64,000 nucleotides of DNA from Octopus bimaculoides. Its lineage: Eukaryota. Numbering within the stretch: position 1 is the stretch's first letter; the number at the start of each line of letters is the position of its first letter. Of this stretch, positions 26,201 through 60,000 are shown one piece after another. The notes beneath the pieces were generated by a model that saw nothing but the letters and a program-made list of their open reading frames with translations, was not told the DNA's origin and searched no databases. Location of the stretch: the NCBI RefSeq assembly GCF_001194135.2, contig NC_068984.1, forward strand, positions 11,216,910 to 11,280,909. Direction: 5' to 3'. The position numbers and the translations under genes were made by a program.

Positions 26201-29200
26201 TGTTCCTGTTTTAATGTCAATCATTTTAAGAATCACTGATAAATCAAAAGTGATTTTGAATAAAAAAAAACTAAATTCATCAATTCTTAAGAAATTACCA
26301 ATATAATTTTTAATGTGGACAAACCATAAGCAACAAAGTCATTCTCATAATTACATATGATTTCCCTGCATTTAATATAAAATGGTTCAGTGCATATATG
26401 CTGCATAATAAAATTTAAAGGAAATAATTCATTCTCTATTTGTAATAATATAGGCTGTTGTGTTTTTAATATATTTGAACTAAATAATATTTGTTAAAAT
26501 TAAGAAATTATTAAATTGGATTTTTTTTTTTTTTTTACATATCTTCAATATTCTGTAAATATAAAAATGAAACTTAAAGTAATTGAAACAAGATCTACAT
26601 TAGCCAGTCCAGATTGTAGTGAATAATTTAATAAAAATGATTATTGTATCATTTAATTAACAATGTCCCTTGTGCTGGAAGATTTATGAAAACCAATGCT
26701 TGAGAAAAAAAAAAACTAGCTTATATAATAAAGAATCAATATAATTATTCGAAGTAAAGGAATAATACATAATTACCATATTAGCAACCTGGTGAGAATT
26801 AGCAGGTTTTTTAGAGAATAACATTTTGTTCATTCAAAATTTTTTTTTTTTCATTTCACATTGAAACAGGGAAGGAGAGTAGAAAGTTGTAATGTTCATG
26901 CCTTTTTAAAATGTGTTAGGAAAATAATAATTAAAAACTATAAAAAAAGAAAAAAACAAAGGAGGCCTAAATTAGTTTTTGTTTATAACTCATCAGTTAA
27001 TTCTTTTCTCTTGCATCCAACACTCTAAAAATCCTTTATTGTTTAGTTGTATTAATTACTGGTGCAAATGTTTTTAAACTGGTTGGTCTCTGTTTGGTGG
27101 AAGCATTAGCTGTTTCTCAGCTAGACTGACTGAAAACAGCAAATATGTAATGACATTTTAGAGTACAGTAAATTAACTAAATTAAACTGTTGTCAGCTTA
27201 ATTAGCTGCAACAATTCTTCATGCTAAAATTTTCCTGAAGAAATCATTCTATTGTTACTTTTCTGTTAACTTCAGTTAACAATAAAATTGCGAAGTGGAC
27301 ATCATACCTGAACTATGAGAATGTGAAAACTTGTAATATAGATTAAATATGCACATTTCTCAGCTGCTTCGGTGTAACCATACTCAGTAGTTCATTACAT
27401 TATATAATATAATGTTAGAGGAGGACTTTTTTTATTTTCTTCTTGAGAACTATCCAACAAAATTTCATCTCAGAACATCTTTAGAAAATAAATACGAAAA
27501 AGCAGTTTAGTGGTTTACTATTTCTGTCACTCAATATATAATAATAATAATAATAATAATAATAATAATGACGATGATAACAATAACAAAAGTTTCTAAT
27601 TTAGGCACAAGATCTAAATTAGCATTTCTTCCCATGCCCTGATAATTCTGCCAGCTTGCCACCTTTTAATAATAATAATAATAATAATAATTATGAAGAA
27701 TTACAGCAGTAATGATTTCTTCATATGTACACAGTGTTTTCAAATATGACAGTAAGCAATTGTTCTCAAAATGGTTTCAGAAGTTTTGCTTCACAGCCAT
27801 CTAATTCTGGCTTGAATTCCACTGCATGTCATCTTGGATATGTGTCTTCTACTACGTGTTGACCAATGCCTTTCTCATTGGTATTTGGAAGACAGAAACT
27901 GCAAAAGGCCATCCATTTTACATATGATTCATATACATATACATCATGCACACCACACACACACACACACACACATATATTTAAATCAGTTCCTCTCATC
28001 TTTCCCTTCCCCCCCCCCTAGAATCCTTACACCCTCTCTCTTCTCCTTCAATTATAGGGAGTCACTTTAGGCACTTAATATTATAAAGTTACAAGGTGAC
28101 CTCATTGCCACTGGGACCATGAAAAAATTATGCAGTGCAATCTAAAGCAGTCGGCATTAGGCAAGGCATCCAGTTGTAGAAACCATACCAAAGCAGACTT
28201 TGTTATCAGCCAAGACTTACTCTGGTTCTATGATACAAACTTTCTGTTTTAAAATGATCTAAGTTAAACATTTTCCATCAATATTATTTTACTAAATTCT
28301 TTATTATTTTCAAAATTAATTGAAACAAAAGGCAGCTTATTGTGTCAAAAAAATAAATATGGTGTCGAAAGAGTTAATTAGTCATAGCCATGGGCCTGAG
28401 AACAGGGGGTGCAAGTGCACCCAGTAAAACTGTTGTGGGGTGCAAAATCAAAATTTGTACCCCTACTTACTTTTGTCAGGTTTAGAAAACATTGAGTAAA
28501 AAGTGATCTATAAAAAGTAGCTTGAAGATAGATTTCTTCTCAAAGAACATGAATAAATAAAAAAAAAACATGACCTTATCTGTAAAAATTTGGGGGTTTG
28601 CACCCCCTAAACAAATTTTGTTCCCAAGCCAGTGGTTGTAACAACTTTTCATGTATACCTGTCAGTTATATGACACTAAGTGAAGGCACGTGGCTTAGTG
28701 GTTAGGGCATTCGACTCACGATTGTAAGGTCATGAGTTCAATTCCCAGCAACGTGCTGTGTCCTTGAGCAAGACACTTTATTTCATGTTGCTCCAGTCCA
28801 CTCAGCTGGCAAAAATGTGTTGTACCTGTATTTCAAAGGGCTGGCCTTGTCACGCTGAATCTCCCCACATGTACGTTAAGGGTACACGTGTCTGTGGAGT
28901 GCTCAGCCACTTGCACATCAATTTCTCGAGCAAGCTGTTCCATTGATCATATCAGCTGGGACCCTCGTTGTCATAACCGACAGAGTACTCCTACATATGA
29001 TACTAAACTAGAAAGCAAAACTCCTGTTTTCTGAAATATCTCTCACTAAAAATCTTCCATCAATGTTTGCAAGTTTATTACTGTGAATATTTCTATTTTC
29101 TGTTTTGTAGTGTTTGCACTTGTTTGGCGAGAGTTGACTCAGTCTGTGATCATGTGTGAAACTGTAACAAATAAATCAATGAAACGGTTACAATAGAGTA

Positions 29201-57000: not shown

Positions 57001-60000
57001 GAAGAGGTGGGTTCAAACAGAAGTGGAATGCAGTTAACAAGTCAGTGATGCTGAATAGCGAAAAACAGAAGAAAGTGGGGTGGGTGGGTGCATAATATAA
57101 CAAAGTCTTCTTTTTCTTTTTTTTTTTGTCCACTATAGGTTGATGAATCAGTTAACTCGATGGATTCCTTTTGAATATCTGACACCTTTCAATATATTAA
57201 TAATAGCATACAATTAATCAAAACTGTGCCATTCCAATTCTACCAAAGACATTTTCTAGACAAAGCTAAGAAATAGATTGTTTTGAAAGAGTGGAACTCT
57301 AAGTTGATAAAGCTACAAATTATCATCAACGTCATCATCTGGTCAAGTTTGCTTGACCATTTTTAACCCATGCATGCTTTCCATCTCAATCCATCATTAG
57401 TTGAGGGAGGTCTCTGGAGAGGCATCTAGTGTTTATTGTGAGTTGACCTACATAGGTTGTGTTCAGACAACCTGCTCGAGTACGGCCATGCTTTGGCATC
57501 CATAGCAGTAGATCTCTTGCCAGCAATGTCCTGCAAAGTGCAAGTGCCTTTCCCTTATAATGATGGAAATAGGCAGAAGGTTTTCATACAAAAAGCTATA
57601 AGTAATAGCATGTAAATATAATAAATAAAAAATAAATATCGCCCTTTTAAAGCCTATCCAGGCTCATGGGCCCAGTTTCCCGGTTTCTATGGTGTATGTG
57701 TTCCCCCCAGCTGGACGGGACGCCAGTCCATCGCAGCATTACTCAAGGAACAGGAAGAAAGAGTGAGAGAAAGTTGGGGTGAAAGAGTGCAACAGGGGTC
57801 ACCACCACCCCCTGCCAGAGCCTCGTGGAGCTTTAGGTGTTTTCGCTCAATAAACACACACAACGCCCAGTCTGGGAATCGAAACCGCGATCCTCCGACC
57901 ACGAGTCCGCTGCCCTAACCACTGGGCCATTGCACCTCCACAGCATGTAAATATAGGGCTACAAAACACTTGGGTAGAAAACTTTGAAGGCTGCTTGTAA
58001 ATATAACAGATATTCTAGCATGGACAGCCTTTGATTTCTTTTTATCAAAAAGGATTTTTAAACCAATATTTAAACACTGTCATTCATAGCTTTATCTACT
58101 TCAAATCCCACCAGTAAAAATGAATTATTTCACGTTTCTTGAAGTTTCTAAATTTTTATGATGTAAACAATGTGTGTGTGTGTGTTGTAAATAAGTGAGT
58201 AGCATGATGGAGAAAAAAAATAACCAGATCAAGGAATTACTGCAGTGTTTTAAAGTCTCTTTATCCCTTTTAAAATAATATTGCCCAAGATATATTTTCT
58301 GATCTGTGGCAAAATGTCCTTAACAAATCAGCCATTTCACTAAGAGATGGTGCCATGCCCATGCTGGTGCCACATAAAAAAGCACCCATGCTGGGGCCAC
58401 ATATAAAACACCCAAGCTGGTGCCATGTAAAAAGCATCCAATATACTCTATAAAGTGGTTGATGTTAGGAAAGGCATCCAGTCATAGAACCCTTGCCAAA
58501 ACAGACAGTTGGAACCTGGTGCAGCTCTCCGTCTGGCCAGCTACTGTAAAATCACCAGCATGGAAAACACCTTAAATGATGATGATGATACAAAATACAA
58601 AATGGCAGTATATGACTGTAATTATAGAAATACTTTTTTTGCATCTTTTTCTCACCATTGCATGTCCATACGATGAGCGTTTCTTATTATGTCGGCCAAC
58701 TTGTGCAGCTGCTATAACATAGCACTGGCTTTCAATGGCACGGCTCCGAAGTAATGACTGGAAATATAAGCAAAACATATTACAGAATACAGTATGTAGA
58801 TATATATTCAGACACACACATACAAGGTACAGCAGAAAAATCTGCGGATCTTTTTTAAAACAGGGGCCACATTTTTCATTAATGTTTTACGTAGTGTTTT
58901 TGGTACCGAAAGGCTTTCAAACTTCGTATACTTATCTATTTTGTGTTATAGAACAGAAAAATATTTTTGTATTCGAATTTATTTCATGTAAAAAATTGTC
59001 TTATTTCGATAATTTCAACCAATCACTGACAAGTATTCAGTTGTTTACATTTACTCCTTTGGCTGATTAAGCGGTGTAAAGCGTATTTAATTTCCATAGC
59101 TTCGTTTTGCTTTTTTCTTTTTAAATTTGCTGTTTTACCCTAACCCTAACCCTATCACCGATAGAATTGTTTCAGAATCATTTGTTTATGTAGTCGGCAC
59201 TTATTGTATATCGGCTGAATGGACGTCAGTGATTGGTTGAAATTACAGAAATACGACAACTTTAACATGGAATAACTTAGGGATTTCTTTTTTTTTTAAG
59301 AAGACTAAAAGAAAAAGATGTTTTATATGACACATTCTACCAGTGTTCCAAGTTTCAAAGTGTTTCGTTAATGAAAAATGTGGCCCCCGTTTTAAAAATG
59401 ATCCAAATCTGCTGTTGAACATTTATCAAGAATGGTAACTCTGGGAGACTTTTTTGCTCCATACCCTGAATACACACATACAAAGCAATAAAAAAAAATT
59501 TAGAATACAAAATTTCTGAAAGTGGACGGCAAGAACAAGAATAATGTGTTCCAAAGAAAAGAAAATGCATTACAATTACATTGTAACTTTATTTACATCT
59601 GCCCTCTCCTAGCATATAACCACCTCCCTCAATAGTGCACCCCAATTGTCAAGGGGTTTTAGTCTTGCAAGCTGCAAAGTGACCTCACTAGTGCTGGTGC
59701 CACAAAAAAAAATGCATCAAGCACTCTCTGTAAAGTGGTCGGCATTATGAAGGGCAACTGTGAGGCTGGAGGAACCAGATGGCTAGATAATGAACAGTCA
59801 TAGGAACCAAGTGAAGCAAACACTGGAGTATGATGCAGTCCTCAGACCCACCAAATGTTATCAAAACATACAAATCATGCCAGCATGGAAGACAGGTGTT
59901 AAATGAGAGTATAAAATCTTAGGTAAGGTGAGTTAAATGCTGAGAAACAACAACTCAGCCCTTCAGAAATATACAAAATTTAAGATCTGAGTAAATTGAG

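Follow-up and report, generated by a model that had tools for sequence, protein, structure and literature searches.

The stretch analysed here comprises 64,000 nucleotides of the Octopus bimaculoides genome (RefSeq assembly GCF_001194135.2, contig NC_068984.1, positions 11,216,910 to 11,280,909 of the forward strand) and is called the window in the following. It is AT-rich (34% G+C), contains assembly gaps and is densely populated by interspersed repeats. Subject of this study is a group of short interspersed elements (SINEs) of 260-360 bp, in which two types of 5′ part (C and D, each a head with its adjoining body) are combined with two types of 3′ tail (X and Y). An earlier note on this DNA had reported all four combinations. 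Comparison by blastn within the window confirmed that they are present and that the modules pair as claimed. A fifth copy carries a third tail. The elements are located as follows:

28681-28994, plus strand: E1, a D+Y copy, with a CORE-like body to 28817 ending in AAAAATG and tail Y at 28818-28994
29304-29564, minus strand: E2, a D+X copy, with the D head and body at 29420-29564 and tail X, with T-runs at its end, at 29304-29419
45592-45948, plus strand: E3, a C+Y copy, with the C head and body at 45592-45772 and tail Y at 45773-45948
57621-57941, minus strand: E4, a C+X copy, with the C head and body at 57746-57941 and tail X at 57621-57745
14339-14549, plus strand: E5, a 5′-truncated D-type copy with a degenerate, Z-like third tail, situated after a (CA)n/(TA)n microsatellite

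Within the window, the C heads of E3 and E4 are 82% identical over 193 columns, or 88% if a 15-nt deletion of E3 between the A and B boxes (45625-45640) is left aside. The corresponding values are 81-82% over 170 columns for the Y tails of E1 and E3, 75% over 134 columns for the D heads of E1 and E2, and 73-75% over 130 columns for the X tails of E2 and E4 (all by blastn). In E5 the D-type part covers 14339-14474 on the plus strand and the 3′ part is unlike the other window copies. It was matched by the D profile with an E-value of 9e-38 and by the Z profile with 4e-8, the latter profile having been built from a D+Z copy of Octopus vulgaris and E5 itself. E1 (+) and E2 (-) form an inverted pair, arranged tail to tail with a gap of 309 bp (28681-29564); palindromic SINE arrangements are known in bivalves (PMC11481361).

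Each of the four composite elements E1 to E4 is directly adjoined at both ends by a direct repeat. These repeats comprise 12 nt with one mismatch for E1 (ATATGAcACTAA and ATATGAtACTAA), 11 of 11 nt for E2 (TCAAATAGAAT), 11 nt with one mismatch for E3 (ATAGATGtAAG and ATAGATGcAAG) and 14 of 14 nt for E4 (AGCATGTAAATATA). As a null, 4905 random pseudo-elements of 250-360 bp were taken from the same window, allowing one mismatch. Flanking repeats of at least 11, 12, 13 and 14 nt were found here with frequencies of 1.1%, 0.45%, 0.14% and 0.10%, respectively, and the chance probability per element ranges from 0.01 to <0.001. The four abutting repeats together far exceed chance. Since these 11-14 bp target-site duplications (TSDs) bracket the whole composites, each element was inserted as a single unit, and the earlier view that each had retrotransposed as one piece is supported.

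Outside the window, the sample covered a 20-kb stretch of O. vulgaris, nine Logan contigs, all of them short, and a dozen peptides from gene models. A peptide derived from the C+X element gave one match in the protein index, a 'hypothetical protein' of O. vulgaris. The locus of this protein (L001, OX597820.1:57357915-57378280, 20 kb) contains five more elements; over the 84 kb of window plus L001, the C/D-type copies number 10. Those of L001 are:

6205-6512, plus strand: C+X copy
10057-10309, minus strand: C+X copy with a shortened X, followed by an A/T microsatellite
11504-11835, minus strand: D+Z copy
5115-5417, minus strand, and 18213-18477, plus strand: D′+W copies, which depart from the D sequence already at TTGCTCTG

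Since this locus adds Z and W, at least four tails (X, Y, Z and W) are carried by D-type heads. The proposed system is thus larger than two by two, with D+Z and D′+W at the O. vulgaris locus.

An exhaustive HMMER search with the E1 peptide across the CORE 3′ end and tail Y matched ten proteins, six of which derive from Logan contigs (runs SRR11869384/90/91/94). Among these proteins and those of the other peptide searches, the D+Y junction (SPLSWQK-x-VVPxFQ) was found in P0005, P0006, P0009, P0010 and P0013, while P0003 has it on the reverse strand, and the junction between C body and Y was found in P0012. P0008, in which the C tRNA-head is fused straight to inner Y, represents a deletion variant or else a splice. 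With a composite of all SINE-derived peptides, only two gene models were matched. P0004 is an O. bimaculoides protein, and gene models of the O. bimaculoides type share repeats with the window. In a profile scan of the Logan contigs, a full-length C+Y copy was detected in L013 (197-555) and six D+Y copies were detected in L017, L021, L019, L020 and, twice, in L016; one of the two L016 copies had not been selected by the query. Independent copies thus add up to at least eight for D+Y, at least two for C+Y, three for C+X and one for D+X, where the D+Y number is biased upward by a query that held D sequence and the tally indicates recurrence, not frequency. Because their junctions recur at independent loci, D+Y, C+Y and C+X are propagating families and not accidents. 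Single-copy accidents, which would have counted against the system according to the earlier note, are not what is seen for three of the four types, whereas D+X was met only once. Stretches translated in frame from these SINEs were also seen in chitin-synthase-like, collagen-like and LIM-homeobox-like models (P0002, P0003, P0004 and P0008), reflecting either real exonisation or annotation read-through.

All copies share a ~75-nt, RNA polymerase III (Pol III)-type head with A and B boxes and, behind it, the first (5′) half of a CORE-like domain (TTGAGCAAGACACTTTATTTCA..TTGCTCCAG). The heads of C and D start with GTGGAGG/GTGAAGG and both types have the A box TGGC..AGTGG and the B box G.TTCGATTCC. 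In E1, the A box of the tRNA-like head is TGGCTTAGTGG. With zero or one mismatch, the A box pattern TRGCNNAGTGG is present in E1, E2, E3 and E4 and in the copies L1b, L1c, L1d and L1e, and the B box GGTTCGANNCC is found with zero to two mismatches in most copies. The Rfam tRNA model scored 26.5 bits for E1 (28690-28749) and 28.4 bits for L1d, a D copy of O. vulgaris, at a gathering score of 29. Using ARAGORN at default settings and the curated Rfam thresholds, no tRNA or other family was called in the window; at an ARAGORN threshold of 80%, the head of E4 was called as tRNA-Thr(CGT). A tRNA ancestry of the heads is supported, though weakly, as is expected in old SINEs. Judging from their sequence, E1 to E4 are to be classed as tRNA-derived SINEs (SINE2 type).

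The two heads had been regarded as distinct. Profile searches with nhmmer matched every D copy with the C profile at model positions 1-127 (E-values of 1.6e-14 to 2.5e-4) and every C copy with the D profile at positions 2-124 (1.7e-17 to 1.7e-6). Behind the B box both types have the stretch TTGAGC.A.ACAC....GCTCCA in common and diverge only beyond it, where D continues with GTCCACTCAGCTGGCAAAAATGAG and C with ~75 nt unrelated to D (CGAGGCTC...CTTTCTTCCTGTTCC). Because the profiles match each other over ~125 nt, the heads are homologous, and C and D are two lineages of one head of tRNA+CORE type which split after GCTCCA. The distinction thus holds downstream of GCTCCA, but the heads are not independent of each other. 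No significant alignment was obtained between the C body and two Deu-type fish repeats, neither taken from a database; only TTGAGCAAG.CACTT of the D copies matched. By reading, the 23-nt Ceph motif CCTCCAGCTATGGGTTAAATAGT (PMC5786205) could be made out neither in C nor in D. The Ceph domain consists of a CORE-like part and a fragment of an RTE 5′ untranslated region (PMC5786205).

In CORE-SINEs, a CORE domain of ~65 bp comes straight behind the tRNA-related head. In type D, the CORE-like domain also includes a 3′ half, which ends in AAAATGAG, while type C keeps the 5′ half alone. Against a MIR consensus not taken from a database, the D copies E1, E5 and L1d are collinear with positions ~79-142, with z-scores of 5-7 and above all shuffles. 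A D+Y consensus of seven copies gave a z-score of 7 against this MIR sequence and aligned from the A box to position ~171, above 500 of 500 shuffles, and this alignment runs through CCTTG.GCAAG..ACTT.A...TGC.CAGT..CTCA.CTG.AAAATG. These alignments provide a strong lead that type D may be a CORE-SINE. OR2 of O. vulgaris is listed as a CORE-SINE (PMC4758252, PMC5804259, PMC5381342) and is remarkably similar to MIR/Ther-1 (PMC5381342). The SINE repeats of octopus are dominated by tRNA-Core and tRNA-Deu (PMC8967140).

The first ~30 nt of tail X form a hairpin, (G/C)CTG-Y-GATGG-ACYGRYGWC-CCRTC-CAG(C/G), which is located at 57709-57737 (-) in E4 (GCTGCGATGGACTGGCGTCCCGTCCAGC) and at ~29382-29410 (-) in E2. 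According to an RNAalifold prediction, 11 pairs are kept in four of four copies; the closing pair varies between G-C, C-G and U-G, and there is one further change from U-G to U-A. Compared with a segment of a teleost V-type repeat, likewise not taken from a database, the hairpin is identical at 24 of 26 nt (z-score of 12), but outside of it no similarity to that repeat was found (z-scores of at most 1.4) and X lacks the V domain's 5′ part. The resemblance of X to V- and Meta-type SINEs, which had been suspected, is therefore confined to a conserved hairpin of 26-29 nt. This X-core may correspond to Vhc, a stem-loop subdomain of the V domain. The tail ends in T-rich runs (TTTTTT), which would double as Pol III terminators. 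Scanning public DNA for the X hairpin yielded 11 matches, and these are chance matches in GC-rich bacterial genes with the exception of one unclear, AT-rich contig (L005). On this contig, which is probably eukaryotic (ERZ1740055 NODE-27502, 35% G+C), an X/V-type hairpin (TGCGATGGACTGGTGTCCTGTCCAGGG) lies at 2680-2715, with no recognisable tRNA-like head nearby. Scans of viral and prokaryote genomes gave no real matches.

Tail Y has a length of ~175 nt and its 3′ end reads ...CGACGGAGTGCC(A); neither window nor Logan copies have a poly(A) there. In several gene models of the O. bimaculoides type a run of Asn codons follows Y, which suggests that Y there precedes an A-rich triplet microsatellite. 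The alignment with MIR reaches ~25 nt into Y (GTACCTGTAATTCAAAGGG against GTACCTACCTCATAGGG of MIR), and past these ~25 nt no match to the MIR/L2-type tail was obtained. If this alignment holds, the start of Y would be SINE body and not a tail derived from a long interspersed element (LINE), and D+Y would represent the older arrangement. E1 and E3 have a predicted local hairpin within Y in common (CCGTTGATCGGATCAACTG). A metagenome scan with the Y pattern returned 0 matches.

The points at which X and Y are joined are the same behind C and D heads. D+X, D+Z and D+Y all switch directly after AAAATGAG, the end of CORE. At the D+X junction AAAATGAG is followed by AAATCCTG; at the C+X junction ...GTTCCTTGAG is followed by TAATGCTG, with TGAG in common with D. 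Y is preceded by TTG or TG behind both types: the D+Y junction joins AAAA(T/C)GAG to TTGTACC and the C+Y junction joins ...CTGTTCC.. to GTACCTG, in agreement between window and Logan copies. A second recurrent breakpoint is situated after (T)TGCTC(C/T); here the lineages C, D and D′+W separate. At the fixed exchange points, 2-4 nt of sequence are common.

Considering the shared modules, the TSDs, the homology of the heads and the recurrence of the D+Y, C+Y and C+X junctions, it is highly probable that the four elements are members of a group of tRNA-derived SINEs in the octopus genome that is both large and modular. How such a group arises we infer from established SINE biology. A master copy would be transcribed by Pol III, the reverse transcriptase of a LINE would recognise the 3′ tail of the SINE, and target-primed reverse transcription would place a copy of the RNA in a nicked target, leaving a TSD of 11-14 bp. 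Occasionally, SINE RNAs would exchange 3′ modules with each other, or SINE copies would do so as DNA. The recombinant would then be amplified as a family, and its new tail would probably open the machinery of another LINE. Since the junctions are fixed and share 2-4 nt, they would fit template switching of the reverse transcriptase or recombination at microhomology; the data are compatible with an exchange at the RNA as well as at the DNA level. That SINEs exchange modules by template switching or recombination is the accepted view (PMC4824008, PMC4758252, PMC5786205). The earlier note had gone further and assumed a recurrent reciprocal swapping of tails, which is more than the data require: by the four-gamete argument, a single exchange in addition to the acquisition of the tails is sufficient.

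A composite could also be produced by chance, if a head-only SINE was inserted beside an older tail fragment, or the reverse. The density of SINEs is very high, as mentioned above, and E1 and E2 are separated by just 309 bp, which would favour such nested insertions. This explanation is largely refuted and scarcely credible, however, as the repeats of 11-14 nt enclose the whole composites and abut both ends, the junction nucleotides recur in copies that are independent by locus and data set, and no solo X or Y was detected by nhmmer in the window and L001 (nor was a solo Z or W). A different question is posed by E2, and possibly by others, which might be a one-off chimeric retrocopy formed by a template switch within a single insertion, and not a member of a propagating family. 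LINE-mediated chimeras of this kind are documented (cited in PMC4824008), and D+X has a single copy in the sample. On the other hand, the exact TSD of E2 (11 of 11 nt) suggests little decay since insertion, while its D module is 61-77% and its X module 69-78% identical to those of other copies, which points weakly to a distinct, diverged source lineage, the sample of X-tailed elements being tiny (four copies). We consider a one-off origin of E2 improbable, but the status of D+X as a family is unproven, since it was found only once.

Exchange between SINEs would be unnecessary if the C and D lineages had each captured their tails, in parallel, from the 3′ ends of the same LINEs. SINE tails classically originate by capture from LINEs (PMC4824008, PMC5786205). 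What speaks against parallel capture is that the 5′ boundaries of Y (TTGTACCTG...) and of X (GAGWAATSCTG...) are the same behind C and D. Furthermore, Y aligns over its initial ~25 nt with that part of MIR which immediately follows CORE; if this alignment holds, C would have taken Y from a D+Y SINE. Parallel capture is thus unlikely. Building on the exchange reading, one may speculate that the breakpoints after GCTCCA and AAAATGAG are preferred exchange sites and that the conserved domain acts as a hub by which many LINE tails become open to one Pol III head. The chances of this being correct are rather slim. If true, octopus would be a natural system for testing whether conserved SINE domains are kept because they promote module exchange, and the hairpin conserved from fish to octopus would travel within one such tail. 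That conserved domains persist by module exchange is a long-standing, unproven hypothesis (hypothesis ii in PMC5804259).

Several observations weigh against the interpretation as a modular group. At the C/Y junction of E3 there is a T7 run (45766-45772), which would terminate transcription by Pol III. Since the independent C+Y copy L013 reads TCCCACC at this place, the run is probably peculiar to E3 and has arisen later, and E3 itself is probably a dead copy. D+X was seen once only, in E2, among the window, L001 and the nine Logan contigs. The comparisons with CORE and V sequences use references that are no database entries. The predicted folding energies of the tails are no better than those of shuffled sequence (z-scores of -0.04 to -1.2). 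Finally, when the 84 kb of window and L001 were searched with nhmmer, none of the tails X, Y, Z and W was matched by a LINE 3′ end. For this reason, the dependence of these SINEs on LINEs and a change of the partner LINE are steps that we infer; the earlier idea that a tail swap changes the partner is plausible, but a matching LINE 3′ end was not met in this sample. Recently active LINE groups in O. vulgaris are RTE, Dong-R4, CR1 and L1-Tx1 (PMC13282606).

The window contains a number of additional features:

63051-63230, 60945-61055 and 56564-56707, minus strand: CN_hydrolase pieces (Pfam)
52328-52504 and 50253-50327, minus strand: HIT pieces (Pfam)
62231-62385 (minus strand), 21014-21191, 55446-55615, 56051-56195, 4649-4812, 11756-11880, 12344-12463 and 53333-53470: copies of a further tRNA-like SINE family
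1579-1865, 2682-2961, 32574-32873, 47522-47693, 56306-56407 and 63568-63676: copies of a (CAT)n repeat family
23660-24448, minus strand: remnant of a Tc1/mariner-type transposase (Pfam DDE_3, 25 bits, just below cutoff), interrupted by an N gap
35297-35659, plus strand: open reading frame (ORF) with a weak PHD-finger match (19 bits)
49918-50115, minus strand: second ORF piece, without a Pfam match

The CN_hydrolase and HIT pieces are exons of a NitFhit-like gene (50253-63230, minus strand; Pfam), in which E4 is intronic and in sense orientation. For the HIT exon no homologue was found in the protein index, which is odd for a conserved gene, and a look-up of the window ORFs gave no match. The further tRNA-like SINE family is abundant, reads GGCGTAGGAGTGGCTGTGTGGTAAG...CCTTGGGCAAGTGTCTTCTAC..., ends in (TA)n or (CA)n microsatellites and is often found beside assembly gaps. 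A motif like the 5′ part of CORE is visible by eye, and the D profile had no match to this family at E<0.01. The (CAT)n family starts with (CAT)n on the plus strand, which means an (ATG)n end on the other strand, and its peptide occurs inside the gene models P0002 and P0004. As the copies at 1579-1750 and 47522-47693 are 97% identical, this family is young. A LINE-like ORF remnant at ~8060-8470 (-) is 5′-truncated and ends in (GAT)n(AAT)n, and the two may form a SINE/LINE pair with a common microsatellite end. At 13339-13428 there is an almost perfect hairpin of 90 nt (GCAAGGCAAACATCTCAAG...CTTGAGATGTTTGCCTTGC), which was matched on both strands by Rfam mir-944 with 50 bits at a threshold of 100 bits; it looks like a palindromic repeat or an element resembling a miniature inverted-repeat transposable element, not like a known microRNA. 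The two ORF pieces at 35297-35659 and 49918-50115 look like retroelement remnants, and neither lies near an X or Y tail.

Elements with a comparable architecture have been known for a long time. Gilbert and Labuda reportedly described CORE-SINEs in 1999 as a conserved head and domain to which many different tails are joined, and the octopus SINEs OR2, OR1 and OK are said to go back to Ohshima and Okada in 1994. Like the CORE-SINEs OR2 and MIR, type D would have a tRNA-derived head, then a CORE-like domain and then differing 3′ ends; with OR2, the likeness of D+Y would be one at class level. Type C differs from CORE-SINEs in having the 5′ half of CORE only, followed by the unrelated body of ~75 nt. 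An arrangement similar to D+X is given by the Ante SINE of the scaphopod Antalis entalis, which contains CORE and V domains with a short spacer (Luchetti and Mantovani 2016, PMC5804259). The order is the same in D+X, where CORE is followed by ~12 nt and a V-like hairpin; E2, however, has a tRNA-like head, and its likeness to V is of hairpin size only.

The closest parallels in the exchange of modules come from other molluscs. According to the legend of Fig. 7 in Matetovici et al. (2016, PMC4758252), four Littorina families (Lsa_3 to Lsa_6) have heads and tails combined reciprocally about the Snail domain. In these 'jigsaw' SINEs, heads with their 5′ body are joined to tails with their 3′ body, following the same logic as C and D with X and Y. 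The same paper describes Vhc as a stem-loop subdomain of ~39 bp of the V domain, conserved in SINEs of molluscs and arthropods; X-core is likewise a conserved hairpin of similar size, compared with a fish sequence only. The 'jigsaw' SINEs differ in their gastropod and bivalve hosts and in their Snail and MESC domains, the octopus elements being from a cephalopod and having other domains. For MetaSINEs, it was argued that changes of the tail via template switching explain survival (Nishihara 2016, PMC4824008), occasional exchange of SINE tails was reported by Kojima (2018, PMC5786205), and in bivalves SINE superfamilies and LINE partners were described as forming a 'mosaic' (Martelossi 2024, PMC11481361). 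MetaSINEs and the HCD-SINEs of bivalves combine, as here, one conserved head and domain with variable tails. In those elements homologous tails occur across superfamilies and survival is proposed in the papers to depend on a change of the LINE partner through template switching; for the octopus elements, no partner was found in 84 kb. The heads of MetaSINEs, directly behind which a Meta domain of 66 bp lies, were compared with tRNA-Thr (PMC4824008), which is also the call for the C head of E4 at the relaxed ARAGORN threshold.

The novelty that the earlier note had seen in the module exchange is therefore not given, since the concept is already published (PMC4758252, PMC4824008, PMC5786205, PMC11481361). 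The families as such are possibly undescribed. A search for the module strings in the full text of the literature matched only unrelated trout primers. SINEs make up about a tenth of octopus genomes with most families unclassified, and of the 900 SINE families given as recently active in a 2026 annotation of O. vulgaris, 893 are unclassified (PMC13282606). The module map presented here, which consists of a common tRNA+CORE head, four or more tails and the two breakpoints, helps the annotation of such repeats and offers a data set for asking which LINEs move which tails and whether conserved domains are hotspots of exchange. The current understanding of SINE evolution is unchanged by these elements: the shuffling of modules in octopus is a well-documented local case of what is known from the SINEs of other molluscs.

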